Positions 1 to 25,399 of a DNA stretch of 64,000 nt are shown here, in pieces. The notes beneath the pieces were generated by a model. That model had not been told where the DNA came from. It worked only from the letters and a program-made list of their open reading frames with translations, and made no database searches. Location: NCBI GenBank assembly GCA_024704765.1, contig JAKMXF010000332.1, positions 194,259-258,258 of the forward strand, given 5' to 3'. The first letter of the stretch is position 1; every line of letters begins with the position of its first letter. This stretch comes from Oopsacas minuta (taxonomy: Eukaryota > Animalia > Porifera). The position numbers and the translations under genes are program-made.

Positions 1-1285
1 ATACCGGAAAAGGTAGACCAAAAGCTAGCAGTGAAGTCTTCACAAGATGCAGAAGAGTGTCGGCGTTAGTTCTAATTGTTGTGTGACAACCTAGAAAGAC
101 TTCTTCACTTTCCATATGGGCATTACAGAAACGAATGCAGAATGAAACTTGCTCCTTCCTGTTGATGTCGGATGTTTCGTCCAGAATTATTGAGTATATA
201 GACTATTCTTCAGCGCGCGTTCTTCCTACAGATTCTGATTTAATGCGAGTAACAAGATGGCGCTGGAGGCCGTGGGCGAAGATCTCCAAAATCTCGTTCT
301 GGGACTGAGGTGTCAGATATTTCAATTTGATGTCAACAGTGATGTATTTTTGAACAGAAGTATTCAACTTTCCAATTAACTTGAACAAGCAATTTAAGTT
401 GGCAGTGTTATCTTGATCACGGTGACCACGCAAAGCCAGACCCTGGTGCCCACATACTCTTACAACCTCGAACACAGCCTCTAGGCCAATCCTGTTCAAC
501 TCGTTTTCATTCGCGACCATTCATCTAAAATCACCCGATGAATATGCGCCAGTTTCACCGCATTCAGTGCGTATTCTCCACCCTTATGAATTCCACAACC
601 GTCGTGTTTCAAGATCCTATCACGCCCCCTTTTGAAGTCGGCCCATCCAGCCTCCCTGTTGATCCACAACATATTATTGCCACCTACATATGTTCTCATG
701 TCAGCATTGTTGAAACACTTGCACTTGAGAGAGCAAAAACAGGTCATGCACTACAACGATTTCCTGTTTTCTTCCAACTTCAACCAGGAAAACTCTCCAA
801 ACCAGCTACTGTTCATCTTGTGATTTGATGGGTTCATCTTAGGCATTTGGCCAGGAAGCTCGTACATGTTCTGGGTATCAGGGATCTCCAGTTCAATGAC
901 TTCAATAGGAGAAGTAGAGTTCGCGACACCAAGTTCTTCACCATGCTCAGCAATTTGCAGAACATTTCCCAAGTTCTCTAATACGGAAGGCGTGGTTTCT
1001 AGGGGAAAGGTCATCTGCTTCTTGGAAATGAAGTGGGTCAAAAGAGTTTGATCTTGCTTCCTTTTCGTAGACTGTTCTGCCATAACAAGGAGGAATAGTA
1101 TTATACTTAAGAAGTATTCAGTACCTAAGATAATTAGCAGAGGCTAATCTACAAAAGAGATAACAAAATTGAAGTAAAATACATAAAATCTTCTCAAAAA
1201 ACTGGAGGGGCGGAAGCACCTTCGCCCCCCAGTTTTAAAGTCTAGGGGGCCAGCCCCCCCCGGTCCCCCAGACTTTACGCCTATG
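1..1285 (-). mobile_element. hAT transposon (ZMYM1-like/DUF4371 type), 5' part only, disrupted transposase
   Basis: Minus-strand frames give LALRGHRD, YLTPQSQNEIL and YSIILDETSDINRKEQVSFCIRF (first catalytic Asp), plus a TTF-type Zn-finger remnant (496-747). A GC-rich terminus reading CATAGGCGT on the minus strand ends at 1285. The other end lies outside the window. Confidence 0.85.
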
Positions 1286-2061
1286 CAAATGCCATTAGCT
1301 AACAACTTTTTATCAATAATCATAAATAAATGTAGATAATGGGCGCTTTCGCGTTGGTAAATAATAAACTACAATCACTATTGGCATGCAACAAACTATC
1401 AAAGTATCATTATACGTATATGTTCGTCATACTTTGAGAAAATTTGGAGTATTGACCTTCCATCATTAACAAAAAAATATTACGCATACATGTAACTCGC
1501 TAGAAATACGTAGAAATAAGTCTCCATTGTAGATACGTAGCTAGCAGTCAAATTTACACAGACTTGGTAGCACTGACATAAAGAGAATTGCGGCTACCAA
1601 TACCTCTAACTGCAAAGAATCTAGAATGATCTTCTTGATCAAATCTTAGATCTATTATGGACAGATATCAGGATCCCATTATCATATTTCTATTAACCAG
1701 ATAGTAGTGAGCGAACACAGCCTCCAACTTTCGAATTTTATACAGGTGTTCGATCTTAAATATTCTTCTGCGTCTAGCTCTACATATGGTACTATATCTC
1801 TGAAATAATATCTCAACAGATTAGCTGACGATTGTGATTGTATAAATCAGGAACAACTTGATATAGAACATTATCTCACCTAATTGAATGAAATCGTACT
1901 TCCTGAAATACAGGGTGGCCCCAAAGTTCTGTCCCATCTTTTAATGTACAAGGAAATGAAGATACTAGAATCACTATACATGATTTAATGTTGTAATCGA
2001 AGCAATTGAGTCAGTATTACAAATGTTACTAAGTATATTCCTGGTTCACTTCCTCTAGCAC

Positions 2062-4312
2062 TGTTGCGTAGTATTTTGACCCGCAAGTAACAATTGCAAA
2101 TCAAGTAATATCAACATCTCATCCCTAGTCATATAGTATTCGTATTTATACATGTGTGACTTCCTAAATACACACAACATTTTACTTTGTTTCTAGATTT
2201 CAACATCAACACTTATATTTACTTTTGAGTTTTTCATTATGGATGCGACAGAGTATGAAGCAATTCGTGGATACCTCCAAACGAATATTATCCCACCAGA
2301 AATCAAGAGTGATCGCTACAGAAAGAAGAATTTTGTCAGAAAGTGCGAGGGGATTTACTTTCAAGAGAATAAGCTAATAAAGGTATTTTTCTGAATGATA
2401 TTTTTGATTTATACATATTTCCGGGACACAATGAGAAATCTTGAGGTAACTACATATCTGCGAGGAGGCAGAAGTATCAGAATATGAGAATATTCAAATG
2501 GATGCAAACGAACCACACCCATTTGACTTTCCTATAATTGATACCGAATGGATAGAAAATCTTTCTCCCACACGTAAAGCTGACAGGATGACTGCTATTG
2601 AAAACATCAAGGTAGGTCAGAAAGTTCAAAAGAATACATATGACAGCAAAGTTAAACACAACAGGTAAGCAATAACGAAACACATTCTTGTTGTGATGTA
2701 ACATGTTGGAATTTCATACATTATCTCTTACTAAAATCAAATTAAATTCACTGACTGTTGTATAATCAGGTAAATATGAAATATTCTTAAATCGGAAATA
2801 ATTTATTGTTTCCTCAATTATATGAATTCATAAATTCCAAAACACTTCCTTTAGTTATAAAATTAGCATCATTACAAACTGTACTTAATTGGCAAATTAT
2901 AATTCTTTGTATAATCATTGTTTTAAATTTAGATTAGCATTGTGGAAGGAGATGAAGTACTTGTGCATAATATAAAGAAAGCCAAGCGACTCCAAGGAAC
3001 AAAAGGTGCGAAGAAATATTTGGGACCATATACGATAGAGAAAGTTGAACCAAGCCACCTAGTTGCTCGCAGACCCAGATAGCAAAACAACAAAATTACC
3101 TATCCATCTATCAAGAAAATGTCATTCCCGCATGAACGAAAAAGGCAGGTTCGAACGAAGACAGGCAAATCAAAGAAGCCCAAAAGATCTTGCAAATTCA
3201 CTTCTAGCGGTAAATATACTAACGAGAAAATATTACACTGAACTATAGCTAATTGACTCAGCCCATGATTAAGTACATATAAACTAGTTGTGTTCTGTAT
3301 TGATTCGATTAATACGTAATAGCAATCCTATATTTCACATATTTATTATGTATTTAGATTTATTGGATGATATTGAACCTGGATACCATGGAAGAAACAT
3401 TTGAAACACCCCAACAACACTCAATCTATGAAATTATCGATTCTAAGCTACTTCTATTGAAACCTCGAATACTATCAGCCCTTGTTAATAACACCTACTT
3501 AACCCAACTACATGAGAAACTCGCTACAAAAGCTGCATCTCTAACTTCATTAAATTTGCTATATTCTTACCATCCACCCAACGAACTAAATTTTGAGATC
3601 AAGGAGAAATTTCCTGTATCAGCCGGTAATTAGTACGCAGAATATCGTTCCTCCTATCCTACTGAAATACCTGAAGAGATACGAAGAGATCTTGACTATC
3701 CAATTGCTGTTCTATTACCAGCAATAATTGAGTTAATATTCCCAATTGAGCAAGTATTTATTATGAGTAATTAAATACAATTATCAAATAACTACCACCT
3801 TCTGTACAAGTAATATTATCATAAAATATTTATATACACTGTCTATTTTTGGCATTTTGGATAATTATAAATATTGTAAATTTGTCATATGTAGTGGGAA
3901 TATAGTTTACATGTTATCAAACAAATTCACTACTTTCTAGAATCCAACTCTAAATTGACTTGTTTATTCAGTTAGGTATAAGTATAGCCAGTCTAAAGTT
4001 GAATTACATTATGTACATTTAGTGGTAATTACGTAATGAGAGTGTATGGAATTCGAAAAAGTCAAATGGAAGAGAAGTAAGATTACTTTAGGGCCAAAAT
4101 CCTACGACAATAATACATTATATGCGGGTCGAAATCCTACGGCTGTAATTAGTGTAATACAATTTGATGCGCTCAAAATCCTACAGCTGTAATTAGTGTA
4201 ATACATTTTGATGCGGGTCAAAATCCTACGCATATATTACATAGTAGGATTTTGACCCGCACCATGGATATGCTATTAGGATTTGTATTGCGGGTCAAAA
4301 TCCTACGCAACA
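2062..4312 (+). mobile_element. Non-autonomous Ginger-type element (double internal deletion derivative of the element at 60111)
   Basis: TGT...ACA termini with a 25-bp TIR (TGTTGCGTAGGATTTTGACCCGCAA, one mismatch on the left) and a 4-bp TSD GCAC (2058-2061 and 4313-4316). Near-identical to 60111-60543 and 62466-63760. Confidence 0.93.
4091..4312. repeat. Subterminal array of the TIR core motif GCGGGTCAAAATCCTAC (6 copies, one inverted), including a ~45-bp tandem unit
   Basis: Copies near 4091, 4125, 4170, 4213, 4245 (inverted) and 4290, read directly from the sequence. Confidence 0.85.
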
Positions 4313-4328
4313 GCACTTAGTTAAGCTA

Positions 4329-5348
4329 TTGGAAGTCGAGAGAGCAGGAATTATTCGTCTATTTGAAAATGGTAAGGCTCCAGGAGATTTTAAAGTTGCT
4401 CAATATGCCCAGGAGTCGACGGAAGTTTGTATATTGGAAGATCCAGAGGTACAAGCAAACAGGAGGTAAAGGACAAGGCTAGATCCGGTCGTCCTTCCTT
4501 AGTCACGACTCCCAGGCTTGTCAAGAGGGTACGGGAGCAAATCCGAGTTAACCCGCGTCGATCCATGAGGAAAATGGCTGTAGATCTTCAGATGTCACGC
4601 CATTCCATACAAAACGTCGTGAATACTAAGTTGGGAATGTATTCCTTCAAAAGAAAAAGGTCCATCATCTAACAGACCAAGTTAAGCAAAACGATAGTCT
4701 AGATGTAAAGGGTTGTTGGGCGGCACGCGAATCACGGTCTCGAAACGATTCGGTTTTCCGATGAGAAGATATTCACTATTTAGGAAGTTACAAACGCTCA
4801 AAATGACAGGACTATATCGGCAACACGTTCTAGTATCCCAGAAAAGTATCGAAACGTGAGTCGCATACAGAAACCTCAAACTGTAATGGTATGGTCTGGT
4901 GTCTTGGCAATTGGTCGGATACCATTGATATTTGTCCCCCCCTGGAGTAAAAATAAATTCTACCACCTATCGGGAGTTTACCTCGGAGCCCGTATTACAG
5001 AATCTAGGTCAAACAATGTTAAATGGAGAACCGTTTATATTCCAGCAGGATGGAGCCCGGCTCATACCACCAATAGTACCCAAACCTGGCTCCAACACAA
5101 TTTTCCAGGATTTTTCAGAAGACAGAATGGCCTCCCTATAGTCCAGACCTGAACCCGATGGACTTTGAAATCTGGTCCATCCTGGAGGCCAATGCTTGCG
5201 CCAAGTCTCATAGCTCTGTCAAGTGTTTGAAGCGGTCTTTGACAAGGGAGTAGAACAAAATACCTCAGGAAAGCATTCGTGCCGCGATTGGTGCGTTTTC
5301 TGGACAATTGAGAGCCGTAGTTAAAAACGAGGAGGTTATATTGAGTAG
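4329..5348 (+). pseudogene. DD37D (maT) transposase, frameshifts and stops
   Basis: Motifs RSGRP, FSDEKIF, VMVWSGV, FQQDGA, WPPYSPDLNPMDF and GGYIE* are spread over several frames. Confidence 0.9.
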
Positions 5349-6149
5349 TAAAAATAATTTTTATTTCTGATAGCATTCTGTAAGACGAGTAAATATTGCC
5401 AGCCTATAGCATCCAATTTAGGCAAGTTATTCACTTTATCAATGGGACAGGACTTCAGGGCCACCCTGTAGAAGTCTATTCCAGGAAGTGAGATTAAGTA
5501 CGTAGAACGTCTAATATATTACAAGATATGCAGTTGTTTCTTACATTAAGAAGTCTGATGGTTGTCAATCTTGTCAAGGCTTTAAACTTAATGTGGTGAA
5601 ATGTGTGAATATTTTATTTGAAACATTTATTCAATTTGACAAGTGTGAGTCCCTAAGCAAAGAATTATATACTGCATGACCTCGAAGCTTGTTGGCATAT
5701 ATATATATATATGAGCCTTCATGTAGATAAATACAGTGATATGTCAAAGATTGGTGTTATTTGGTGTCTGGAATTGGGATATATTGAGAAATTATGCTAA
5801 ACATGGTCAAATATCATCTTGTCGAAGAGGGTTCACAATTATAATGTCATGGTATTAAACAGAGATAACATTATCTAAAGAATCATTTTCGATTACAGTA
5901 TTCAAATATTAATACATGCCTGACTGACGGGTGGAGATAGTGAGATAACGAAGAGCCAGACAAGATAGTGGATCCTCCAAAAGCGAGGGACCAAATCTTA
6001 CGGGACCAACATTCCGGCTTCCGGTACACTGTAAATGAATTATTTATCAATATTATCTTCATATATACATATATACATATATAGTACTATGTTAAGCAGA
6101 ATGGATTGTGTTTCTACTCTTAATGTATTAGAAGCAAGTATCCCTTTCT

Positions 6150-6212
6150 ACCGCTGCGCGGCTCGCGAAGATTTCAAGTTCACGGCTGGCGCACCTCTGG
6201 TGCTCTTGTATT
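6150..6212 (+). other. Possible Helitron-like 3' end (short hairpin followed by CTTGT)
   Basis: GC-rich patch with GCACC-TCT-GGTGC followed by TCTTGT. No 5' end was identified. Confidence 0.3.
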
Positions 6213-8739
6213 CATATTAAGACAACGGGTCATTCAAAAGTTATGTACGCAAATTCCATAAATATTGATACCTCATCTTTGTGTCACACTTTGGATCGTA
6301 AATAATACAAAAGAATGGGGCTGTCAGACTTAACATACAACCAATGGGGTGGCCCCATATAGCGTTACATTCCGTTTGAACAACCCATATTATACATAAT
6401 ATAGATATGCAGAACATATATAGCATTAAAACAACTTACATCATGTGAAAGTGAACAATAATTACTTGTTATTCACGTTTTACCTTTGGCAATTTTCGCT
6501 ATTTTGACCCCCTTACTAATTGAAATATTAGATAATGGCATGTGTATTCAGTAACATTTCAAGTAATTAGCGCGAAAAATAACTTAAAAATCTAGTTTTC
6601 GATATATTTATGCCTAATTGTAAAAATTAGGTGAGTTTAATTGGTCAAATAGAAACAATAATACACATAGTTACATATTCATAGCATTGGAATTTCAATT
6701 AAATCACAATAATATATTCATTGAGTATGTACATATTATGAACAATATAGTGGTGGGTACATTCGATAAATATTGTGTAATTTTCAATTAACAAACCATA
6801 GCTACATGTCTAAAAACAGAAATTTAAAAGATTTTGCACAATTGGAATTATTGAGTAATTTTTGCACCCTAAATGAACTGGGTTAGAAACAAACTCATAA
6901 TATGGCAATATTAGAACTATTGGTAAACCCTCGAATCTGAAAGGGCGATGCATTTTGACGCCAATCTCAGAGAGGTTTTGAGATATCGCTTATATTTTAG
7001 ATATTGTTCATAGATTCATCACATTTGAAATTTGTAGTTCTTACCAGTTCTTCAATCAATTCGGGACAAAAAGAATCATTCAATAAATTGTATGTATTAT
7101 AATTTGGCAATGATATTTGGGTTGTGAGGTTGATCATTAAAATAGAACAAATGTTGCATTAGATCTCTTTAAAATAGCGTTGAATGGCATTATAACAATT
7201 ATTTGAAATTTTGAGTCCGGGGTAATTACCATCCATAGTCCAGAATTTAAATAGGGTGCCATTGCCTTAGTGTATAGAATGTAATGATCCAGCTTTTGAC
7301 TCCTATGAATACTTCATTACATCAATAGGATATTCTATTTATATTATGACATTTTCTGTTTAGAGATTCAATATATAGGCTCTCATGAAGTCCAATACCA
7401 AGAAATATTTTTGCATGTTTACATTATTTCATATTTCAACGTATGTCCTATGTATCCTTGTTCCATGAATGAAAACGAAAATTACAAAAAATTCTAGAGC
7501 AAACACCCTGAAATAATTCTCCTAAATTTCCTCCGCCGCTAGGAAAATGTTACCTTTTTGAACAGTCATAATGAATTAGCGTTTGAATAAAAGCATGAAA
7601 TATGGTTCAATTACAATCTTGTATATTGTTGAGCAGTGGCTAATTGTGTTATTCCATATATACTGAACCAAACTACTGTTTAGCAAAATGTTGATCGATT
7701 GTGATTAATGAATAATCCATCTTCAAAAGAATCCACATTCATTGAATGTACAGTCTTAGTGGATCAAGACATCACAGAAATGTCTTTATACATGTATTCG
7801 GCTATGCCGCTAAGTTTTCTTACCTAAGGGATGTTTTATGAGGTTTGAGAAAATCCAAAAATTGGGATGACATAGGTCAGGCATGGACAACTATATTATA
7901 CAGCTAGATAAGTGATGTATTTGCTAATTTCTTTATCAAGCAATTGTTCTTATCAAATTACTCGTAAATTTAAGTATCTATTATCATGGTATCAACAAGA
8001 ATTAGGTCTCAAAGCATGTGGAAACATCTAGAATTGATTTCTAACCCGATATAACCACAATAACGCAATCAAATATTTATGTACCTCTTATAATACTTTC
8101 TATAAACTAAATTCTGAACTAAAAGTAAGTACTATTATAATTTTTGATATAATCGTAACAAGAAACAAGAATTGCCATTATACTAAGGTAAACAATTAGT
8201 TTTTCTGACGCTTTTCAATTTAACATCCGTAACATGGTCCTCACGGTGGGTTCCATTAATCTGCTTCCACAAATTGTAAAAAAAATTATTGGAAAGGATC
8301 TTGTTCACAAGTTCTATTGATTGAATAAATTTTCAGAGCAAACATATCAAGTATCCAATCAGTTGTTGCAAGATTCAGCAATTGTTGAGGTATTGTTTTC
8401 CAAGCATAGCCAGAATTTCGAATGTGTCTTTCTGAAACAGCAAACAAGCAAGTCGCACATGCCACATAACGGTGTAAAGATGTTTGGGAAGAATTGAACT
8501 ACACTGATTTTGATAGGGATAATTCTCAGACTCTATTGTTATATTGCTTCGATATTAGTTGGATAATTGAATTTGTGCATACATTTCAGTTTCGCGTAAA
8601 AGAATCATATTCATTTTCATAGAAATTAGATCCATTTTGGGATGTCTGCTAAACGCACTGCTCCCATCTGTGGTGACAGCCAACAAAACATGTAAATTAT
8701 CAGGATTTCACTGCTTCTTCGCAGCACCAACATTTGTCT

Positions 8740-10130
8740 AAGGTTTCAAGAATCGAACATGATGGGTCATCAAATGGAATTATTGAAATACACAGAGAAA
8801 ATCAATGTGAACAAGGTGAATCAATGATTCTATCTCTCGGATCTTTTCCCAAACACATTGATGGTTGGATAGCAGATAGAAAGAAGCAAAACAGAATTAA
8901 AATGAATGTTTTCACTCTGAGCCCGAACGATGGTGTATACAGCTTGAGGTGTCGCGATCATGATAGAAAAGGCACAGGAAATACTGCTGACAACTATGGT
9001 CGCAACCTGCAGTTCCAACCAAGGGGTACATGTTTGTTGATCACCTCAAATCTGCAAAACATGAAAACGTAATCAAAATTGAGCGGTTAAAACGTTCCTC
9101 TGCAACCTATGAGCAATATAAAGATCGTATGCTTAACAAGGAGCGTACAGTGGCACAACGCATCATACTATATCAGCATATACATATATTGGTTACTAAA
9201 GTAGGAAATCGCCAATTGTATATTTCCATCGCTTCAACAGCTAATTGACCAAATTAGAAACAATGAACAACGCGATTTTCTCCACACAAGTTCATATAGC
9301 ACAAGCGAAATGCTCATCCTAATCAGAGTCAATCTATGCGACGAAGTGGTGTCTAATCTTAAATAATTCCGATATTGAGTAACGATGGTAGATAAAACGA
9401 ATGATATCGCACACTAAAACAGTAAATCACGTTCGTTCAGTATGTAAACCGAGGAAAAGTGGTAAACAAATTCATGGATATCCGTCCTATTGACGCCGCT
9501 GGTGCTACAGCCACATATCTCATTAAATATTGGGAGGCAAAGATCAATGATTATGGCCTGGAAGTCTCAAAACACACAGGTATTAGGTGCGATAGGGCGG
9601 CTGCAATAATTCGTCATACAATTCATTAGTGGAAAAGTAAAAGAAGTTGCTCGTGCTACCATAGTTGTCTATTGCTGTGCTCATGGACTAGCTCTTGACT
9701 GTACAAATACAGTTAGCTCTCTATGAAGATCAGATAATACGAAATAGCTTCAGCAGTGGAAACATTTAGCAGTTCCTCCACTGGAACCTTAAAAGCTGGC
9801 TAAGTACAGAAAATTGTCGGAAATTAAGGGCTGAGGCTATCCAAAGCATGTAAAACTCGATGGCTATCTTATGACGCTGCCATTACAGCTGTGATATCTG
9901 AAATATCTGCTTGTTGAATGGCACTTTACTATTTTGCAATCGAAAAGAACGATGCCACCGCCCATGGCATCTTCCATATTAAACGCAAAAGAATTGTAAA
10001 TTCATATTACGTTTAATATGGATGTTTGTATTTGCTAGAAACGGCAGTGAAAAGCCTCAAGAAGCTTTGGATGATATTTTAAAGCGGAGGCTGAATTTGT
10101 CCACACATTACATCAGAATTGGGGTAGAAT
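8740..10130 (+). pseudogene. hAT transposase remnant, ZNF862-like
   Basis: Motifs FVDHLKSAKHE, MVDKTNDI, VVYCCAHGLAL and CKTRWLSYDAA, with many stops and frameshifts. TIRs were not found. Confidence 0.8.
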
Positions 10131-10842
10131 GCTGTAGCAACAGGTAAAAAATTAAATAAATCCCTCAATATACCTAACAAATAAAGTATTGACAAGTATG
10201 TCAACGGCAAGTAATCACAACCATAATATCAAAATGCAATTAATTTGTATGTATCTACATATGTTGCAGTATAGAAGCGAGTTTGGCATGATTGTAATCA
10301 AACCAACTACTTGGTGTAATTGCGAGTTTCATTTCCTACTATACAGTTAAGTATGTAATCCTTAGCGCTTATTTGAGTATTTGGAAAGTGCTAGTTTCAT
10401 ATTTAGATCCCAATTCTAATAGTTAAAACATATTGAATGTTAATTACCGTTTTGAACAAAACCATGTAAATACAGATATCGATTTCTTGAGTAATATTTT
10501 AGTTGTAAATATCAATTCTACAATATGATTATCCTCATACTACTCTTGATATTGCCATTTTTCTAATACACAGTGAATTGAGTGCATGTTTCCAATTCAA
10601 ATTTCGAGGAGAAGGTTCATCTTGATTCAGGTTGAATCTTAGTGATTTACAATTCATATTTCGATCTTGGGTATAATATTGGAAAGGTGTTGAACAATTT
10701 TTCATCTGGGAGTTTATCTTGAAAAAAATATTATGTCTCAGCACTGACTCTTGCTGCAAAGACTTCCATCATTCTCTCCATAGTAAATACAATAAAAGGA
10801 ACTCTCGTATATTTCTCAAGTTATTGATGCATTCATATAAAT

Positions 10843-13331
10843 CAGTGGTTCCCAACCTTTTCTGGGTGCTACCCCATTTCAGAAACCAGCATTAGAGCGC
10901 GGCCCCTCAAAAAACGAAGGCATGTCTGTTACTATAATACGTACTCCATTAACATTCATTTCAACGAATTATTGATAATGCCACCCTAAGCAAGATTGGT
11001 ATCATATGATCAATGTGATGGTTGAACCTGTTTTCCAGCAACCAGTTTTCCAATGCAGGGCTCGGTGGATGATAATGCAACAATCATGTCCTTTTCTATT
11101 TCAAGCCGAATCCGGTGCTTCGTTTTCATCACTACCATTGTAGAGAACGACTGTTCTCATAAGTAGGTCGAAGGGTACGACATTAGGAGCCACATTACCC
11201 TCTCCGATAGACCTGGGTATGATTGGAACATTTTCACCAGAAACTGTGCAAAGATTCGGACTGAAATAATGCTTTCTCTCCGGAATCCTGCTTCTGCCTT
11301 ACGAGCTCCTCTTCAGTGGTATCTTCGTCAGTGATGGCGTCTAATGGCGCAGTGAAAGGTTATCTAGCTACAGTGAATAACTGGACGTCGAGCTCGAGAA
11401 AGTAATTTCCAAATTGACTAATCAGTGAGTGATTAGTTCAGGAATTTCGTGAGAAAGAGGCTCGATTTAGATCTTTTCGGATTCTTCCATGAGTACAGAG
11501 AGGCGTGGAAAGAATACAAAACGGCTGCGATTCATATCATCTTTTAACAAAGCCAGTGTTGCAAGAAACCCTTTTATTTTGTCATGGAAGAGCATCAGGT
11601 TCGTGTCTTTGCCTTGAAGTGTACAATTCAGCACATAGATAAGTTCAAAAATGTCACTCAAATAGCACAACTTAGCAAGCCAGTTACTGGACTCGAGCAT
11701 TATCACCCATTCATTCTTGATTTGTGTGCGTAAAACTCTTTTAACTCTTGACTTAGCTCGTGAACAAGCAGAATAACATTCCCTGAGAATGCCATCGTAC
11801 TTGAGTGTAGAAGAGTAAGTTCATGTGGTCAGCGTCCATTTAATCACAGAATAATTTGAATATCCTCGTGTTTAGAGTACTGGATTTGATGTGATTTACG
11901 ATTTTGATCACCAGAGAAAAAAAGTTCACCAGGCTTTCTGGCATTATACAAGTAGCTATCCGTCCCCAATAAATCATGCAATGTATCATAAATGTATGAG
12001 GAACCACTCGCTGTAATTTCGCTTTAAAGCCAGAATGTTTCCCAAGATTGCAGGAGCTCCATCTGTTGTTGATCCAATTAATTAATTGAAGTCCAGGCCT
12101 ACTTTATTGTAAATGGCATCGATTTTGGTGAAAATGTCCTCACCTTTAGTTGTCGTTTCCTATGATTTGCACAGTAAACGCTCGTCGACGAAATCACCAT
12201 CTTTGATAAATCTGGTCCAAACTATCAATTGCACGCAAGATGCAATATCCGTTGTTCATCCAGCTGTATTGCATACCAAGGTGACTCCTTGATAGCAGCA
12301 ATATTTTGTGCAGTGATGTCTTCACTCATGTCACAAATTGTGTGATGAACAGTAATATTTGAAAGAGGTATGATTACGAGTTTACTAACCATGTCTTCTA
12401 CGATCATGAGAGAAATCATTTCCTTGGCACATGGCATTATCAGTTCCTCACCTATTGTGTGTGGACTTTGGCTTTTGCAATGCACGACGAAACACGATAT
12501 TAAGCTTCCAGAGCATTTTCATTGATTAATGACATTTACTCTATTTATCCAAGCGGGTATTCCTAAGCAGGTTAACTTCCTTTCGAAAAAGGAGGGATCA
12601 CTATCTTTGTACGCTGGATGTTTTGATGACAGGTGGTGTTGTAACTGTTTTGCTTCATAGATTCATTCGAAAGTACTCCTTAACAAATAACGCACCGAGG
12701 TTTCTGGACTTCACGATCTATCACATAAAAGAAACTCAACTCAATGAATTTGTCATGATAAGGTCATTTGCGTGATGCACCCGCCATCTCGACATAAGTC
12801 CAGCTAATTAAATCATATTGCATGAAAATAATATCATCCATGTGAGTGTGGGACTCTAATTCGAAATATCTACAATTTAAGGATGAAAGCAATATTTTCG
12901 AAATTTTGCGATTTTTGCAAGTTGAAATTTTTAAATTAAGAGCTGATGGAGCAAAATTGGCTTTAGATTCGGAATCAGTGTACTCATATTAGCCTAAATC
13001 AGTGATCAAAATATAAATAACCACAGTAAACATTGTTTTTCTAGGCCTGTATAATTAACTGTTGTATGCAAATTGCAATAGGTTTTGTAATAACTCATAC
13101 TCCCTAGAATATGCAAACCACTCACACAATCATAAACAGACTGTATTTAATACAAGGATATATAACTCGAAAGAATAAATAACGATCATTTAGCTTGTCA
13201 GTATTGTTTACATATGGTACTGTCAATGCAAACATGTTTACATTTTAATAGTTTTGAGTCTAGCCTGCGACCCAACAAAATATGCTGGGCGACCCCAATT
13301 GGGGTCGCGACACATAGGTTGGGAACCAATG
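10843..13331 (-). mobile_element. hAT transposon, Buster/Charlie group (ZBED5/FAM200-like transposase, disrupted)
   Basis: TIRs CAGTGGTTCCCAACCT and AGGTTGGGAACCAATG, and a perfect 8-bp TSD ATATAAAT with central TA. Motifs SPHTIGEELIMPCAKEM, WYAIQLDE and WLAKLCYLSDIF. Confidence 0.93.
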
Positions 13332-14175
13332 ATATAAATAATCCATGTTCAAATAAACACAAAATATACTAATTACATTGTTTAAAATTCTAACAACTTT
13401 GTTTCTCCAATACATTAACAGAAAGAATGCAAATATTCAGTAAATATTCCAATATATAAGTAGTGTAACCGAGGGTGTATTGACGGGAATGCGAAGGCGC
13501 TTCTCTATTGAAATATTCGGATTATTTAACTATACTTTTCAGTTTAGAAATAAGAGTTCAACATTATAATCACAATTTTATCACTGAGTAATACATTCTT
13601 GTATTACACAATATTGTGAAGTATCGTTTCCATGTGTAAATGCTTATGTTCCTTCGATTTCAGCTAAAAAGTACTGGATATGTTTGCATCCACGGATATT
13701 AATTCAAATTTCCACATTTAGTGCAACTATCTTGTATTTCATAAGTCTGGAAAACTAGGACATCAAAAAGGCGCCGATTGGAGCATAAGATGCGGAAATT
13801 TGGTGGGAGGGTCAGTGGTATAGAGAGTTCCCTCACTTACATACTTAGGAATACACCCTTAGGCGTAAGATGACGGTGCTGGAACTGTAGCATTATCCAG
13901 GAATTGAGTGCTGGAAATGTACCATTATCCGGGAATTATTGAGATGTCTGTTCCTCAATGTTTTCATGATTTCAAGATGAGTGGAGGTGAGTTGATATAA
14001 GTACTGAGATCTACATAGCCGACTGGTCTGCTAACTTCATCTAATATTCATTAGTGACAACAAATAAGAATGATGATATCAATTATGCATTGAATAATTG
14101 ATTTCTTTAAAATCTACAGGCAACAGACTATGAACCCCGAAATCTATCTTTGAGATCATTAAAGAAGATATAATA

Positions 14176-15484
14176 CAGGGTGGCTGCTAAGTTCTGATAC
14201 AAAAATTCAACTACAATATGGCCTTGATGATAATGTATTTACAGTATTTTGACTATCTAGGACCTTTCATATAACATTCTTAATGCATTCAAATTCGATT
14301 TAGCCTACATTTTTCCCAAAAATTTATACTATTGACCATGAGTCATGAGAGGTCAGTAATTGCTGAATTATACAAGGCGGGAAAAGCCCTCCTGAGATTT
14401 TAAAAATTTAACTATTGCTAAAGGACGGAGAGCATCCATCTACAAGACAATAAAACGTTACAATGAAACTGGGAACACGAACGACAAACCAAGGTTTGGT
14501 CGTCCTTGTTCTGTGAGAATCGCAGCCCTCAAGAAGAGGGTGAGAGAACAGATTCGGCGAAATCCACGGTATGCATGAGAAAAATGGCTAAGGAGTTGAA
14601 AGTTGACCGTCAAACTGTCCAAAAAGTGGTACACCGCGACTTGAAAATGCGTTGTTTTAAAGGAAAGAAAGTATATTTCCTCTCAGAGTTAGTCAAGACA
14701 AAACGATTGTAGAGAAGCAAGGCGTTACTTGCAAGACACGCTACCGGCGGACTCGAAAAAATCATCTTTACAGATGAAAAGATTTTCACTATAGCTGAGG
14801 CTACGAATGTTCAAAATGATCGTGTGATCTCTACAGCTATCTCAAAGATCCCTGATAAGTTTAGGTACATCAAGTCGGAAATGAAACATCTCTCAATGAT
14901 GATTTAGGCTGGTGTCTCGGCTGTTGGCCGCACGCCATTGATTTTCGTACCTGTTGGAGTGAAAATCAATGCAAAAACTTACAAGGACTTGATCCTACAG
15001 CCTGTTGTAAAAGATCTGAGCCAGACAAAGTTATTCGGACAGCCATTTGTTTTCCAACAAGATGGTGCTCCTGCTCATACGGCGACTACCACACAGGACT
15101 GGTTAGAGGGCAAAATCCCCGATTTTATCCGAAAGGAAGAATGGCCTCCATATAGTCCTGAATTAAATCCAATGGACTATTCTCTTTGGTCCATCTTGGA
15201 GAATAGGGCTTATTCGGTTTCACACAACACTATAAAGTCCCTGAAAAATTCTTTGCGTCGCGAATGGGAGAAAATACCCCAGGAAACCCTGTGTACCGCA
15301 GTGGAAAGTTTCCCTACCAGACTCAAGCCTGTAATTTCCAAAAAAGGGGATATATAGAATAACTATTTTAGTAATTGAATCATAACAGTAGTAAATAGCC
15401 GTATATGCAATATTAACATTATATTCCAAGTTGTAAAAATATAATGGAGAAAATCCTTTGTATCAGAACTTAGCTGCCACCCTG
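14176..15484 (+). mobile_element. maT (DD37D) element, full length, transposase disrupted
   Basis: 28-bp TIR CAGGGTGGC(T/A)GCTAAGTTCTGATACAAA with TA TSD; 1309 bp. Motifs FTDEKIFT and QQDGAPAH...PELNPMDY, with 37 residues between the second and third Asp. Confidence 0.95.
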
Positions 15485-15601
15485 TACAGTGATCATTAAT
15501 CAAACCTAGCACTTAAGATAATCAGTGCTACCTCAAAATATAATGGAATGGTTATAGACTTTTCGTAGAGAACAACAAAGAGGTTTTTCTGATGTCTAGA
15601 T

Positions 15602-18277
15602 CAGTGATGGATCCCCCGGGGGGTTCAGGGGGGTGCGCACCCCCTCAAATTGGCTATTAATTAAATTTAATTATATATGTATAAATGCCCATGATTAATG
15701 AATGTACACTGTACTTAACATAATTATATAAATATAATTATTAACATCATAGCCCAATATTAAGTATCTTGCAAGTCAACCTGTTTAGTATTTATATGAA
15801 ACGAAAAGTGGAAAACCAACTTACACTGGATTATTTTCAATCCAAACTAGACAACAACAGACCAGATGGTTGCGAAGACGAATATCCATGCTACATGCAT
15901 ACTGAACAACAGGCAGTAGATAACAGTGTGCTTGAGATTAACAGCCCTGCTGGGATGATAAAGGGTAGGTTTTATGTTTTCAAACGCAGAGCTAAATTTA
16001 CGTACTAAATTTTCTAGATATAAACACCGACTGGTCTCAGGCTCAAGACATTGGTTGTAAGAAAGATGGACCTGCCCAACTACTAACCCTCTTCCCTGCT
16101 AAACCTGATTGTAACAAACGAAAAACAAACCGATTCCAGGCATCGTGGTATAGTAAACACCCCTGGATCACTTACAGCGAATCGCAAGACAAAGCATTTT
16201 GTTTTTCCATGTATACACTTCAGCATCACAAAGTTACAGGACAGGTTTACAAAAAAGGGATTTCATAATTGGCAAGTTGCAGTTGGAGACAAAAACAAGG
16301 GGCTAGACAAGCATGCTAGTGTGAATCCCACATTATAGCTATTATGAAATGGGAAACTATAAGTCTAACCCTGTCGAGATCCAGGAAAGACTTAATCCTA
16401 ATCGTCGCATGCAGGTTGAGCAAAATAAAATCTATTTCGGTAAACTTGTCAGCTATATCAGGTGGTTTTGTCTTCAGGAAGTCGCTTTTCGAGGTGAGGA
16501 GGAACACGATGTCGGATCAGTCTGTAGAAGAAACTTCAGAGAACTTCTTGAATTAGAATTCGAGCTGCATCCCGAATTTCTAGCCCAGAAGAAGTCTATT
16601 ATGGAGCAGTACTCAATTTACACAGATTACCTCAGTAAGGCGGTCTACGAAGAATTTATCTCAATCATGGCTGGCGAGATTAGGAAAATTATTGCAAGAG
16701 AGATTGCTCAAACAAAGTTCTACACATTAATGTTGGACGAAGCTTAGGATATCAGCAGCTATGAGCAGCTTTGTTTATGTGTAAGATATTGCTCAGGATC
16801 TGTTCCAGCTGAAAGATTAATGGGGCTCATACGTCTTTCAGAGGGTCTATTTGATGCATGTGTTATACTCCGTGAAGCTAAAGTTCTTATTCAATTGCTG
16901 TCTGGTTTTGGGTGTACACTAGTGGGATTAGCAGCTGATGGTGCTTCTGTTATGTCCGGTAAATTGGCTGGAGTGCAAGCACTACTTAAGGAAGAACATC
17001 CGTGGCTTATCTACGTGCACTGTGCTGCACATAGGCATAATTTGGTTTTAGTAAAGGCTCTCAAAAATTTGTGTCCAGCTATGATCAATATAGTGGACAA
17101 ACTCCACTCGCTATTCAATTCAGCTAAAACGAATGACAGTTTTGAAGCCGAGCAAAAGACACTCAAGATCAGGGTGCTAAAGATTCCATTACGATCAGAA
17201 ACAAGGTGGTCATCCATGTTCCACGTACTAGATGTTATATGCTCTCGCTTTAAACCGATCATGCTCACTCTTATGTAAAGGGCAGGGGATGACGACAACG
17301 CAGCACTAACTGCTGGCGGTCTTTACCACAAGATGGCATGTGGTGAGTTCATAATTAATTGCGTCGTTCTGAGGAAAGCCCTTGCAACTATTCACAGCCT
17401 GAGTGAATATTTACAGGGAGCATCAATTGAGTGGCATCACGTTGTACACGATATTAGAGCCTGTAAGTCGATGATTAGTCAGTTCGGAAACGAAATGTCT
17501 GTTGCTGAAATGTTGGAACAAGCAGAAGAAATCAGTACTGATTGCTGTATCCCCTAAATGTGACCTCACCAGTTAACATGACAAGAAATTCAACAGGACA
17601 TGTTGATTACTTGAGCCATATACAATCATTTTCAACAAAGGTTTGCCACAAAGTCTTAGCTGAATTAGAATTACGATTTCCTGACACTGGTATGGAGCTG
17701 CTCAAAGGCCTGGATGGCCTGAATAGCACTTCACAAAAGTACTTAAAAAGGAAAACACTTAGCAAATTAATTGCTCATTATGGTGACGTATTAGACGTTA
17801 ATGAGACGTTACTTAATGCAGAATTAGCAAAGTACTACATGTTTGCTAATTCTGGATCAGGTAGAGTAACCATGGATCCGGTTTTCTATCCCAATCTGAT
17901 GAAACTCTTTAATTTAAAGAGAAGCTTGCCTGTATCATCAGCAGAAGCAGAGAGAAGTTTCTCAACGATGAAACGGGTGAAAACCCCACAAAGAAACCGT
18001 CTTGATGACACACGTTTATCAGACCTCTGCCTCCTAGCTTCTGAAAATGAAATGACCAAAGCTTTCAACATGAATAGCATAATAGACATCTTCAATCTGA
18101 CAGAAAGAAGGGTGCCTCTATAATTATAAATTATCTATTAATTTACAATAATAAATAAATGCTTAGTTGATTAATTGTTGATTAATTGATAGTTATATAA
18201 CCCCGACTCAGATTCGGCTTGTTTGTCTCGCCGCTGGGCATTGCACCCCCAGATATTTTGTGCTGGATCCATCACTG
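15602..18277 (+). mobile_element. hAT transposon (ZMYM1-like/DUF4371), disrupted transposase 15769-18123
   Basis: 13-bp TIR CAGTGATGGATCC and 8-bp TSD GTCTAGAT. Motifs LMLDEA, AADGASVM, VHCAAHR, SETRWSS and LPVSSAEAERSFSTMKRVKT (C-terminal dimerisation domain). Confidence 0.95.
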
Positions 18278-18474
18278 GTCTAGATGTACAATAGTTAGAG
18301 CAAATTAATTTAGATAACATCCCAGAAATGAGGGGCACAGGAAATAACAATTAAGTCTAAACAAAATTTCCAATTTACTAGCATGACCAAAATATATGCA
18401 ATTATCAGGAGATGGTTTATGCCCAAATTCAAGTATCGGTATAAAATGATTTCCTTTTGGATGCAAAAAAATTA

Positions 18475-18642
18475 CAACCTGTGCCAACAACTTAGTCTTT
18501 TAATGAAATTTGGGAAAAGTGTCACCATTAATTGGAAGCACCATAGGAAGTTAGTTTTAATCTCATACACATAGTACGCCCAATGAATAGTGACACTTTT
18601 TAAACGAAAGTATATAATAAACTAAACCGTCGGTATAGGTTA
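18475..18642. mobile_element. Degenerate MITE (~165 bp)
   Basis: Inverted arms AAAAGTGTCAC...CCAAT and ATTGG...GTGACACTTTT, with outer imperfect arms AACCTGTGCCAAC and GTCGGTATAGGTT. Confidence 0.45.
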
Positions 18643-20901
18643 AAATTTTATATTCTTTCCAAGCGGAGCGAGGATTTTAAATCAATCAAACAAGTTATTT
18701 ACAAATTAATATGTTCAATTTGTTAGCAGTAATTATCAGTTGACAAAAATAATATTAAAAGAAGGAGATACTGGGGGAGATTTAATCGGTACAATTCAAG
18801 AGTGTCAAATTCGTAATCAGCGGATTAAATCATCCTCTTTTGGTGTTTAGAACGATCTTCTACGATTATTCAAAGGTTATATAATAAGGCAAATACATGT
18901 CTTTTAAATTATCCATGGTTAATTTGAAAAATATTTTATTCTTAATTATAATATAAATAATTAAAGCTACCGTTAAATTCAGATATTCAATGAATCTATA
19001 ATATATACAGAACTAGAAGTACCCATTGTTTAACAAATATATATTAATATCTAAGAACAATAGATTTAGTACCGATGACATAGTGCTATAATGAATATTT
19101 TTCATTTACTTTCAGTAAAAAAACTATAACAAAAATTTACATTCTAGGAGAGTATGAAGGTGTAATACATTTTCTCTTTCGAAAGGTGTGAAAATTTTGG
19201 CACCTTTCCTTTCATAATATTTTTGCTAGAGGCCAGACAAAAGTTTGAAAAGTGTGAAAAGTGGAACTTGGTGTCCGGTTGATTAGCACAAGGAGATGCA
19301 CACCCGACGAATTTCTTCAATTTTTTTCACACCATATATTACCTTAATTCTATCCAGTTTTGGTTGCAGGGCTTTCACGGAGATAAAACATGGGTACCCA
19401 TTTCAATGCTGGGCAGAGTAAAAACCTTTATTGGAAGGTGATTCATATGAATCTGGCAGATCTAATACCTGCCACCTTGCTATTGAATATCCTAAAACAA
19501 ATAAGAGCTGTAACAAGCTGCAAAACCTGTTCCCCAACTCCTGCCACTCGATCAATTTATATATTTTGATTTGTTTTCATGATAAGATTTTGGATATACA
19601 ATTTGGTCAATAGACAAATGATATAAAGTGAGACATTAATATTAATTAAGTGAATCATGTTCATTATATGAATAGGGTTATCCTGAGAAACAGATATTGC
19701 TTGTGATAGTGCACGAAAAGGAAATGTCCAACTCTAATGGTATTCGTAAATTTAGAAGGTACCAATTCTATAAATTGAGGTCTAGATTAGTAGTACCCTA
19801 TGCAAGATTCTGGTGATAATTTACTCCAAAACTTTAGACTAGGGTATACGTATATACATCTCATCCATTCTCAAAGATAATACACTTATACCTTCTATGT
19901 CTAACTTGATGTTCTTTTCAAAACAGATTCTAATTTGAATTTGCACTGGAGAAATTATAGGTGGACAAGATTTGGCCATACGGCATGATGTAGAAACGCC
20001 TGTTAATACTCCTGCATAATACATAATATCAGGTAAACTTGGACCTCAAATTTTAAGACCAAAATGTAAGGTCTTTGGAATCTTAGGAAGGTCTTGCTTT
20101 ATACAAAGATTCAAAGTCATTAAGAAACTGTGTTGTGATACATGAGATACTCCTTCTTTTCGAAGTACCACAGAAAGGAGTTGTTTTGGAGATGTGGCAC
20201 ATTCTCTTTAGGAATATTTACTAAAAGTGATGGTGCGGCTAAAGATCCATATAGTTTAGAAAATTTCTGAAGGTGGCATTAAAGAAACGAAGACACAACT
20301 ATCGTTTTTCACTTTGAGTGAATTCAACCTTTTTGACTAATTGTGAATGAGTTAAGCACTTATTATTCATCGTGCTCATTGATTGTTTTTCCATATCACT
20401 GTAGTTTCTGTCAATAACTTTTTAAAGCTGTTATTCAACTCTAAATACGCGGAAAAGCTATTTGGCTGTTCTCCAAAAAAGCAGAAAATATCATGTAATT
20501 ATTATCCAAGCAATCTTTATGATGGAACACCATTTCAAAGGAAGATGGGGAATTTATTAAAACAGTTGAAAGGAAATTTGTACTATGAAAATAGCTGTAT
20601 TATAATGCTCATGCCTACCGATTTTTAACAAAATAAAACAGATGACAACTTATCACTAAGCAAACTAAGCAAAAGTAATCATCATGAAGTACCGGGTACT
20701 TGGTGGAATACATACAAATGTAGTGACATACAATTCGTGGACTATAATTCGTCACATTAGAATGGCCTCACTTTGGATCCGTGAGATTTGTCAACTATGG
20801 TAACTGTAATCTGTTTGCCTCTCGAATACTTAAAACTAAATATGAGATGAAGCTTTAACACAATGTCTTTTTCATTTTTCTAAATTTCACTCCAAATTTC
20901 T

Positions 20902-21159
20902 ATGGGAAATTTAAGTTATTACAGTGATAATGACGCAATGTATAGAAACATGTTAATTTGGCTATATCCTGCTCAGCACCCTCAATTAATACACATTCTG
21001 CTCCTCATAGACAGCAATAATAATTTCGTTGTTCCCTACACATGGGCTGATGAGACCAGGGTATCCATGCAGTGGCGGCGGAAGGAAAATTCACTAGGGG
21101 CTAACTTGTGTAATTATGTCGATGGATACGGGGTTGTTACAATTGACCAAGAAAGCTAG
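20902..21159 (+). CDS. Short ORF of unknown function, possible host exon
   Basis: 85-aa ORF with protein-like composition and no transposon motif. No family recognised. Confidence 0.2.
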   Translation: MGNLSYYSDNDAMYRNMLIWLYPAQHPQLIHILLLIDSNNNFVVPYTWADETRVSMQWRRKENSLGANLCNYVDGYGVVTIDQES

Positions 21160-21369
21160 ATGTCATAATTACGTTACTCAATAATTATCCACTTGAAATT
21201 CAATTATCAGGTCAACAAGCGAGGGCGGAAGAGAGGTATGAATTCCTAAATACATTTAAAGTATAACCTCAATTACAGAGGTCTTAGTAAATGAGGAACC
21301 TCTTAAAGCCAGAAATTCTAAAACACCGAATTATTATTTTTTAATTTTGAAAATTATCGCTATGATAGA

Positions 21370-21890
21370 TTAAAATCTTTACATTCTTCAGTAAAAATGA
21401 TAAGTTGGGAATAGGGTGAAACAAGAATATTCACATCCCCGAACTCAACTACTTAAGAAGTTCGACTTTACAGACTACCTTGAAGCGAAATATCTATACG
21501 AATTGTAACTTCAAGAATCGTATTTGTCAAGAATTGTAATGTTACGAATTGTATGTATTCCATTGAATTGTATGCGTAATGGTGCCATGTATCAATTGTG
21601 GCAGAGTGTGCCAATACCTTTGGCCACGCAATGTATATAATGACATCGCATTTACCCCTCGATATCTGGTGTAGAATTTAACATATAAGTTGTTACTCAA
21701 ATGATCTACCAAATTTTGTTGATAATTATCATATTCTTCATAATTGTAAGGACTGTCGACTATCCAATTCGAGCCATTGTTATCTCTAAAACTATTGAAT
21801 ATTTTGTCATAAAATGAGTATTCTTGATATGAAGTTGTATATGGGGAGTACATTCCACAAAGTGGCATAATTCGAAAATGCCTGGTTTAT
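21370..21890 (-). pseudogene. Coding remnant or exon of an unidentified non-transposon gene
   Basis: 108-aa Tyr/Asn-rich ORF (21542-21868) that continues after a frameshift (TLQFLTNTILEVTIRIDISL...IIFTEECKDF). No recognisable family. Confidence 0.25.
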
Positions 21891-23386
21891 GAGGTGATCA
21901 CACCTCTTCACACGTATATATGTGGTATGCATACTGATAAAAATTCGCAAACAGTTGCAATTAGACCTGCAATATGTAATATGATTACAGGGAAAGTTGT
22001 ACATGGGGAGTGAATTGAACCGCTTTGCTTACCCATAGCATTCAATAAACAAAGGCAATGAGACAGTTGAATTCTCTGTCAGGGACAGTGGTATACTGCA
22101 ATGAATATATACGGGGAATCATAAAATTCCTATACAGTTGAATCGGGATATTTTGACACATGGTTTTTGTCCCATCAGGTTTTTGGTCGTCAAGTCAGTA
22201 GAAAATTGTAAATTCGATATTCTCATATAAAATAATCGTATACACTTGTCTGTTGACTTCGCGTTGCTTAGTCTTTCCGGATGTTTTCGTCTACCTGAGT
22301 GTGTAAACAAATGAAAATCTGTTCTACATATTTTGTCCTATAGTACATTTCTAGTGATTTTTCTAATACTCTATTAGTACATGCTCTAATTACTGGTAAA
22401 TATTTCCAACCCCAGTATTTATTATCAATAGGTGTATATAAGCTATAAAAAATACCTGTATATCAATAAAGGTATTATTGCAATATGGGACATTATGTTT
22501 GTTGGGATATTTGTATATCGGGGTATTTGGTCGTTTGGCAGTGCAATTAAATCTATAAATCTTTAAATCAAAGATATTAACACTATGTTAGAAGGGACCG
22601 AATTTCAAAATGTCATATTCTGGAATTTTTTGAGGTAAATTCGGAAATTCTAAATTGATTTTTTGAAAACTAAGGTGAAATATGTTGTAAATTTCAGGAT
22701 ACTATAGACTAGTAACAGACTTACAGTCTGTAATGTTTCAAACCGATCCATGCTGTTTGGTGAAATGATTGGATGATCCCATAGCTGCTGTATAAATTCA
22801 AATTTTCTAGCTGGAATTATTAAAGTTCTGGAAAAGTTGCAAATATTTCAAAAATTGAAGACACAATTTCAGAAATTCAAAGCCTGATGGAGAAAAGGGA
22901 TGAATATATGGGAATCAGTATAATAGACTAGCTACTAAAGGTTTATATATTATTGCTACAAATTCTTAAAGAAAATTAGACAAACGATTAAGTAAACACA
23001 CATAACTATTAAAGAGTATAAAGAAAGACGGATTGCCGTGAGAAATTCAAAGATTTCTTAATAAGTTCTCCACATACTGAAACACATAGAAAGCAGAATA
23101 TAATGGGCAAATGCAAGTAAAATGGTAAGAGCGTTTGTTAGTCCGAAATTAACAAACTAATACGGCAATCAATTTTTATCCTATTTGGTGGCACGCACGG
23201 CTGTGTACTAAGTATGACATGAATTTTACCAAATTTAAAGCCTTCGGAAATCTTCTAATCCTGGGGCATATTCAAGCCTGAAAGAAACCGAGAAAGGGCG
23301 TAGATACTCATTGTTATCGGAGAGCAAAGAATGCCAAAGAGTATTCCATCAAATATTTAGGAAATGAATTAGACAGGATTACTAAC

Positions 23387-23729
23387 CTCCAAAGAGTTCA
23401 CCATGTAATGACACCTGTAAAATAGATGGATATAATTTACTCAAGTATTCAAATAATTTTGGCAACTTTGGACTAATACTAGATATGATTGTAGAATTCC
23501 ATAGGCCAAAAAAGTAGTCCTCGGGTGAAAGAAATGATGAACGTTTTGCAACTTTCACAGTACCAAATGATGATATATAAAATGCCAAATTTGCACCATG
23601 AACTTTCTCGAGCACAACCCATTGGGGAATCTTCAATAAATCTCTACTATTCCAATCTGAGGAATCTTCAGGCATTTTCTCATAATCCATGAAGAAAGGC
23701 GAATCATGCAATGCAGAAACAGTTGCCAT
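23387..23729 (-). CDS. Rnl2-family (T4 Rnl2 / RNA-editing-ligase-like) RNA ligase, first exon
   Basis: FxxYEK N-terminal motif, motif I WVVLEKVHGAN (adenylated Lys), motif Ia AKR and motif III GELFGG. The frame ends at a phase-1 splice donor G|GTTAGT at 23386. Downstream exons were not located. Confidence 0.85.
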
Positions 23730-24204
23730 AAGGAAAAATCAAATCTAAAAGAAAGGTATCAAGGTACTGACAGCATGCTTACAAGAGACTTTGAGGATGC
23801 TCCTAAGCTAGGGACTGAGTGGACCAGGCTTCCCGGAACAAATATATACCTAAATCCTGGGCACATAATAAAAAGTTGAGTGTGCGTACTCAGTGAGTCG
23901 AATATTCATGATCACATGCAATCAGGACCGTGTAGCATTGCAAGGTAAAATTCTGAAACATTTGGGAATAGGTTCGTACAATGGAGTAATACGCAAATAA
24001 TACAAAATTGGATATCCGCTATTGAGAAAAGTAGGTTCCAACCAAAGTAAGCTGAGTACATCTTCTCATTCTACTATACGAGTACTCAGTAGGGAACATA
24101 CTCTCAATCACTAGTCAGCATGCCAACAATACTGTTCATTAAAAGCCTAGATGGCTAAGTAGGAGAATCTATGCGAATAAAACGCAATAAATCTGTATAT
24201 GTAT

Positions 24205-25200: not shown

Positions 25201-25399
25201 AAATTTTGATGTTTTTCGGAAATCAGCTTGATCGCACAGCATGTTTCATAAGTTTACATCAGTTCAAGCCATTACCGATCTATATAGTATGCGCCCATTA
25301 GGAAACATTCCTACTAGGTATGTTATAATTTTAACGCAAACATATTTTACTATAAAGTCTATACATGTCTCTTAATCTATGAATTTTATCAATATATTC

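Follow-up and report, generated by a model that had tools for sequence, protein, structure and literature searches.

RtcB and RLIG1 are the known RNA ligases of animals, joining RNA ends in animal cells, and RLIG1 is an ATP-dependent ligase of the 5'-PO4/3'-OH type. Reviews describe the ligases of the Rnl2 family as scarce and of scattered occurrence; few are known from eukaryotes, and a role is known only in the RNA editing of kinetoplastids (PMC4599027; PMC3400036). The premise of the original prediction, that animals are without Rnl2, was too strong, since members of the family are present in sponges and in bdelloid rotifers (PMC11258130). The RNA ligase genes of the rotifers are induced by a fungal pathogen and have been proposed to repair the damage caused by ribotoxins (PMC11258130). 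In the window (the whole 64-kb stretch of DNA that was analysed), positions 23729-23387 of the minus strand are very probably the first coding exon of an expressed nuclear sponge gene for an Rnl2-family ATP-dependent RNA ligase. The features of this exon are as follows.

23387..23729, minus strand: exon 1, coding part, of the Rnl2-family ligase gene (open frame; PF09414 and TIGR02307; structures 1xdn and 1s68; family HMM; exon-only depth in run X4)
23589..23609, minus strand: motif I, EKVHGAN, with K42 as the predicted AMP-accepting lysine and with H44, aligned to EKIHGTN of T4 Rnl2 (1s68) and TbREL1 (1xdn)
23538..23549, minus strand: motif Ia, AKRS, with R63, aligned to AKR (R55) of T4 Rnl2; the R is invariant in alignment A2
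23387..23402, minus strand: motif III, GELFG(G), with E111, aligned to GELFG of TbREL1; GELFGG is invariant in alignment A2
23381..23386, minus strand: phase-1 splice donor GTTAGT, with its use in RNA seen in two X4 contigs that depart from the genome at this point (same place and phase of the intron in the relative loci L004, L007 and L011)

The start ATG lies at 23729-23727 on the minus strand, and from there the reading frame continues without a stop to 23387, over 114 codons and one base of the 115th, so that 23729-23387 encode residues 1-114 and the first base of G115. The donor GTTAGT comes directly after the end of the exon, at 23386-23381, which gives the phase-1 junction GGAG/GTTAGT. 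Retention of the intron leads to an immediate stop (GGT TAG) and hence to a 115-aa ORF at 23382-23729. Both in the window and in L001 (987-992), the donor GTTAG is at the same time an in-frame stop, and an unspliced message would end right after GELFGG. This overlap of donor and stop is not conserved across the clade, as the frame is open for 5 more codons in L005 and for 43 in L007.

The family of the exon was recognized by several profiles and structures. PF09414 (RNA_ligase) matched it with 29.9 bits (E 7.4e-07), above the cut-off of 27 bits, and TIGR02307 ('RNA ligase, Rnl2 family') matched it with an E value of 4.5e-14 over profile positions 13-105 of 326. The TIGR02307 score of 52.7 bits is under the 197-bit cut-off because only one third of the protein is present in the exon. 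The top match among solved structures was the editing ligase of T. brucei (1xdn, E 4.4e-07), followed by T4 Rnl2 (1s68/2hvq). With a family HMM that we built in this analysis from 107 full-length members, the exon scored 119 bits (E 1e-34), compared to 5 bits or less for all other stop-free segments of the window on both strands. The frame and these matches bore out the original prediction of a stop-free exon of 114 codons that contains motifs I, Ia and III and ends in a donor at GELFGG.

The exon carries the N-terminal half of the nucleotidyltransferase domain, with K42, H44, R63 and E111. K42 and H44 align with K35 and H37 of T4 Rnl2, and motif I is invariant in alignment A2. According to mutational work from the Shuman laboratory, K35, H37 and R55 of T4 Rnl2 are reportedly essential. 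In the alignment, the sponge protein shows no N-terminal extension; from about residue 10 it corresponds to the first residues of the Rnl2 proteins of bacteria and protists. Because no N-terminal presequence for an organelle was seen, as judged by eye, the ligase probably acts in RNA repair in the cytoplasm or nucleus and not in mitochondrial editing. The hallmark of the kinetoplastid REL1/REL2, which is mitochondrial targeting together with an editosome-binding C-terminal region, was not found; instead, the relatives carry a C-domain of the T4 type.

Four public runs of one sample (X1-X4) contain the stretch, and their depths were compared over 20000-25900. In X4, the depth was 1187-2186 on 23349-23742, compared to 45 on the flanks (26-48 times higher), and this high depth was carried by contigs confined to 23403-23746. 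X1-X3 had a flat single-copy depth across the exon, equal to that of the flanks, and a 4.7-kb contig of X1 spans 20000-24064 without a difference. Two contigs of X4 depart from the genome at 23386 and add 30 letters, which read on the gene strand, with the end of exon 1, GGA GG/C ATT TAC CAG CAT CCT GAT GTT TCT CAA, or GELFGG-IYQHPDVSQ. Exon 2 of this very copy was seen in these contigs for its first 30 nt only, or 10 residues. In the relatives, exon 2 starts with GG-VYKHPEVLKS (L007), GG-IYNHCDVMKS (L011) and GGHYPHP (Ephydatia and L004).

No library type is recorded for X4, and we infer from the pattern of depth and junctions at this locus that it is RNA-derived. Taking X4 as such, the exon is transcribed and is spliced at the phase-1 donor GGAG/GT to a true exon 2, because the X4 depth is limited to the exon and the junction leads into sequence resembling exon 2 of the relatives. 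The junction and the profile matches thus confirm what had been claimed before, namely an exon of an Rnl2-family ligase that belongs to the host genome and is spliced at the proposed donor. It had been considered earlier that the exon might have no transcript, or that read coverage might reveal a contaminant or a chimeric contig. The exon-only depth and the spliced contigs of X4 provide the transcript, on the reading of X4 as RNA-derived, while a contaminant or a local chimera is argued against by the flat, uniform single-copy depth of X1-X3 and by the undiffering 4.7-kb contig of X1. X3 has a loose end at 24921 that reads AGATGTGTATAAGAGACAG; this is presumably the Nextera transposase adapter, which would mark X3 as a Nextera (mate-pair) library and does not reflect biology. 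RNA-seq, DNA-seq and Nextera mate-pair libraries were all described for the source genome (PMC10280926).

The upstream end of the transcript was also marked by an X4 contig, and two features were located there.

23730..23744, minus strand: short 5' UTR of 15 nt, from the AG acceptor to the ATG (the match of X4 contig 27 ends at 23746; ttttag/ATTTG is read in the sequence)
23745..23756, minus strand: acceptor AG with its pyrimidine tract, cctttcttttag (loose end of X4 at 23746)

Contig 27 of X4, a single contig, matches the genome up to 23746 and then has 11 foreign letters upstream, ...AAAAAACTTAC(AG). This overhang occurs nowhere in the window, and when it was extended by AGGT to a 15-mer, the form of a leader gene, there was no match in the fetched loci. 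On this evidence, the 5' end of the mRNA is made by splicing onto the AG 15 nt before the ATG, and the site at 23745..23756 is a 3' splice site, the partner of which could be a trans-spliced leader or a distant upstream 5' exon. Trans-splicing of leaders has been reported from glass sponges (PMC10282587). In L001, L005 and L007, too, there are AG sites with pyrimidine tracts 9-50 nt before the ATG. Further upstream, 24216-25210 is occupied by an array of repeat units of roughly 65-106 nt around the palindrome CCCCTTATCTTGGATAAGGGG. Because the summed depth of the DNA runs was 1200-7900 on this array, compared to about 113 for single-copy flanks, it is a very high-copy element or MITE that lies just upstream of the ligase gene.

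On the other side of the exon, the rest of the window is filled by intron and transposon remnants.

1..23380, minus strand: the part of intron 1 inside the window, with transposon remnants (neither exon 2 nor exon 3 found with tblastn, the HMM or the junction 30-mer; Pfam matches on ORFs)
14938-15354, plus strand: end of a DDE_3 (Tc1/mariner-type) transposase, a decayed DNA transposon (Pfam match on ORF)
17542-18120, plus strand: ORF with a hAT dimerisation domain, a decayed DNA transposon (Pfam match on ORF)

Motifs IIIa, IV and V had been stated to be absent leftwards of the exon, and tblastn and HMM searches extended this to the whole window. The tBLASTn check that had been proposed for the remaining exons found none in the window; the queries were the L004 exons 2 and 3, and there was no match in either the window or L001. 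Among the six-frame segments of the window, exon 1 was the only match of the family HMM, and a regular expression for motif IV gave chance matches only on all stop-free segments. With up to 3 mismatches allowed, the 30-nt overhang at the junction of exons 1 and 2 had no match in the window, and with up to 6 it had none in any of the fetched relative loci. Since this 30-mer is missing from the window, intron 1 is at least 23.4 kb long (donor included) and exon 2 lies beyond the window if the gene is colinear. On the minus strand, exon 2 would begin with GCATTTACCAGCATCCTGATGTTTCTCAATC, preceded by AG. An intron of at least 23 kb is extreme against the mean of 341 bp published for the source genome (PMC10280926).

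The relatives show how such a gene is organized. A word search, by which proteins of 63-201 aa could be returned, gave short ORFs only, all ending at or just after GELFGG, with 64% identity for the best. An exhaustive search of representatives gave 457 relatives; the top two (61% and 54%) are exon-1 ORFs on large contigs, and the full-length proteins of 340-400 aa are at 40-46%. The whole gene is present in L007/L008. There, motif IIIa (...VFDIAIYH) is encoded by exon 2, which is separated from exon 1 by an intron of 6.0 kb, and motif IV (AEGVIIKP), motif V (RIILKRK) and a region matching T4_Rnl2_C are encoded by exon 3. Between exons 2 and 3, a transposase gene of the FLYWCH/MULE type lies in an intron of about 4.5 kb. 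The exons were scored one by one, and exon 3 of the relatives reached 139-145 bits with the family HMM (145 for L007); PF18043 gave 25.2 bits for exon 3 of L008, for a cut-off of 27 bits, and a PF18043 match is on record for P0297/L010. Exons 2 and 3 are 2.9 kb apart in L011, where exon 1 is more than 6.8 kb off. In L009 and L010, exon 3 is present and nothing was found in 10 kb upstream; in L001 and L005, exon 1 is present and nothing was found in 7 kb downstream. The introns of this gene measure 3 kb, 4.5 kb, 6 kb and more than 10 kb in four other glass-sponge assemblies. Long introns are the rule for this gene in glass-sponge-type assemblies, with transposon genes inside them in L007, and the main argument for a truncated copy therefore falls.

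Two further observations concern the relative loci themselves. L006 and L007, contigs of 77 kb and 544 kb in one assembly, have the same neighbourhood of sulfotransferase, YjbQ, Rnl2 exon 1 and MULE with small offsets, and are probably two haplotypes. In L012 (6001-9476, GCA_022075345.1), there are two tandem Rnl2 genes, in each of which an exon-1 ORF and a C-domain ORF are about 350-500 bp apart; they are a compact form of the same split gene.

The similarity between the window and L001 starts at the ATG and stops at the donor. All four glass-sponge copies of exon 1 have an intact frame, with amino acid identities of 52-62%, saturated dS and dN/dS of 0.16-0.31, which indicates purifying selection on exon 1. 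This bears on the possibility that the exon is a dead fragment, that is, an exon-1-only remnant left by duplication or transposon capture that makes no ligase. Such a remnant would agree with the lack of exons 2 and 3 in the 23.4 kb downstream and elsewhere in the window, with the transposon-rich region in which the exon is set and with the in-frame TAG that overlaps the donor. However, it does not agree with the exon-specific depth of X4 and the junction into a bona fide exon 2, with the intact frame and catalytic residues and the low dN/dS against three diverged copies, or with the fact that long introns containing transposon genes are normal in the relatives, and we consider it very improbable. 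Two alternatives had been left by the original prediction: the one with exon 2 past a transposon-filled intron is favoured by the X4 junction and the transposon ORFs, and the one with a truncated copy is rejected by the same evidence and by the long introns of the relatives.

It is also conceivable that the exon is expressed and that the 23-kb intron is unreal, either with exon 2 on another contig or elsewhere, as a result of misjoining in a repeat-rich assembly, or with the two halves joined from separate transcripts. The short mean intron of the published genome, the nest of transposons in the window and the bridging of the region by short contigs only, in the runs examined, could all be explained in this way. 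However, the range of intron lengths in the other glass-sponge assemblies makes a long intron less surprising, and contigs of X1 and X4 are unbroken from 20000 to 24064 and to 23299, respectively. We therefore regard an unreal intron as unlikely, if less so than a dead fragment. In our preferred reading of an expressed nuclear gene, exon 1 is joined in the RNA, at its phase-1 donor, to an exon 2 outside the window. Judging from the relatives, three coding exons would encode a whole protein of about 350 aa, which would include the C-terminal domain specific to Rnl2 as well as motifs IIIa, IV and V. The completeness of this copy is presumed from the relatives, its exons 2 and 3 lying outside the window.

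The positions of the introns are informative for the origin of the gene. Intron 1 (phase 1, in the second G codon of GELFGG) has the same place and phase in the window, L004, L007 and L011, and intron 2 (phase 1) has the same position in the glass-sponge loci and L004. L004 is probably from an animal because its contig carries a Pao-type retrotransposon. For the demosponge Ephydatia muelleri, a homologue of full length is annotated as Em0015g76a (P0044), from which the genomic ORF P0004 of Ephydatia departs right after GELFGG; Ephydatia evidently shares the position of intron 1. In the tree of exon 1, the glass-sponge copies formed one clade (SH-aLRT 90), and the glass sponges together with P0031 and an intron-bearing eukaryotic clade were split (84) from bacteria and other protists. 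In the tree of exon 3, the glass sponges were grouped with a support of 99 and were joined by P0031 (92) and then by Ephydatia, L004, P0048 and P0142 (76), away from cyanobacteria. The deep branches of both trees had modest support (76-84).

The gene forms one clade across five glass-sponge sources, and there are signs that it is an old sponge gene which has been passed on by vertical descent among sponges. A recent horizontal transfer from a bacterium or virus to the sponge, or contaminant DNA, might be suspected. The family is commonest in bacteria, especially cyanobacteria, and in phages; our representative search found it to be abundant in cyanobacteria and present also in Asgard archaea, protists and rotifers, and the rotifer members have been treated as horizontally acquired (PMC11258130). 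However, the gene has spliceosomal introns at places common to other sponges and to an animal-type contig, its exon region is AT-rich and host-like in composition with host transposons on both sides, its depth is single-copy like that of the flanks, and it falls into a clade with other sponges in the trees. A recent transfer or contamination is thus extremely improbable. The hint of horizontal acquisition in the original prediction, at least of a recent one, is unsupported in view of the glass-sponge clade, the introns shared with L004 and Ephydatia and the trees; the phylogeny that had been proposed as a check placed the ligase with sponge and animal-type sequences and not with bacterial members. 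An ancient transfer into an early eukaryote or into the ancestor of animals is possible.

Following what is described for T4 Rnl2 and TbREL1 in the literature, the sponge enzyme would act in three steps: K42 would be adenylylated by ATP, the AMP would be handed to the 5'-phosphate of the RNA, and an attack by the 3'-OH would then seal the nick in duplex RNA. With regard to function, the repair of ribotoxin damage proposed for the rotifer ligases is a reasonable lead for the sponge ligase. We tentatively suggest, as a scenario for which we would claim somewhat less than an even chance, that an Rnl2-type nick-sealing ligase with two fixed introns was present in the ancestor of sponges, and perhaps of animals, and lives on as an expressed gene for RNA repair in glass sponges and demosponges, whereas it was lost by most animals, which use RtcB/RLIG1. 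In the window, the gene would have been stretched by nested transposons to an intron of at least 23 kb, which would still be spliced correctly, and its message would possibly be capped by a trans-spliced leader. That two sponge classes share an Rnl2 gene which is expressed, carries introns and is maintained by selection may point to an overlooked RNA-repair activity of animals, and the sponge ligase is a tractable case for the study of enzyme and expression. A giant intron that is spliced correctly, in a genome that is compact elsewhere, is of side interest for the biology of splicing and transposons.

Our search of the literature found no paper on a sponge Rnl2, the Ephydatia protein included. 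Among the described systems, RtcB is unrelated to the sponge ligase and RLIG1 belongs to a distinct family, and the exon matches neither of them. T4 RNA ligase 2 (gp24.1; 1s68, 2hvq) is of the same family (TIGR02307/PF09414); KxHG of motif I, R of motif Ia and E of motif III align residue for residue, and in the sponge relatives motifs IIIa, IV and V are likewise found, together with the T4_Rnl2_C match. In contrast to the phage gene, the sponge gene is eukaryotic and nuclear and has two spliceosomal introns, and the identity to T4 Rnl2 is about 40%, over 41 aligned residues only. TbREL1 (KREL1/MP52; 1xdn) is likewise a eukaryotic ligase of the Rnl2 type and was aligned across motifs I to III. 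However, REL1 is mitochondrial, resides in the editosome and has another C-terminal region, whereas the sponge protein has no presequence ahead of the conserved Rnl2 N-terminus (FxxYEKM), and the C-domain of its relatives is of the T4 type.

Within animals, the PF09414 ligases of the bdelloid rotifers Adineta steineri and Didymodactylos carnosus are also genes of the Rnl2 family and have the same two-domain build, but in the tree they stand elsewhere, together with Anaeramoeba and further protists, and they are held to have been acquired horizontally. Em0015g76a of Ephydatia (P0044), together with its neighbouring models (KAL5477086.1, 'hypothetical protein'), has 337 aa with GELFGG-HYPHP and motifs IV and V, evidently has the same intron after GELFGG and groups with the glass-sponge clade; it differs in coming from a demosponge and in its identity of about 40% in exon 1. 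The sponge ligase thus adds a new member to a known family; the animal clade to which it belongs has received little notice, and the Ephydatia protein of this clade is already in public gene sets.
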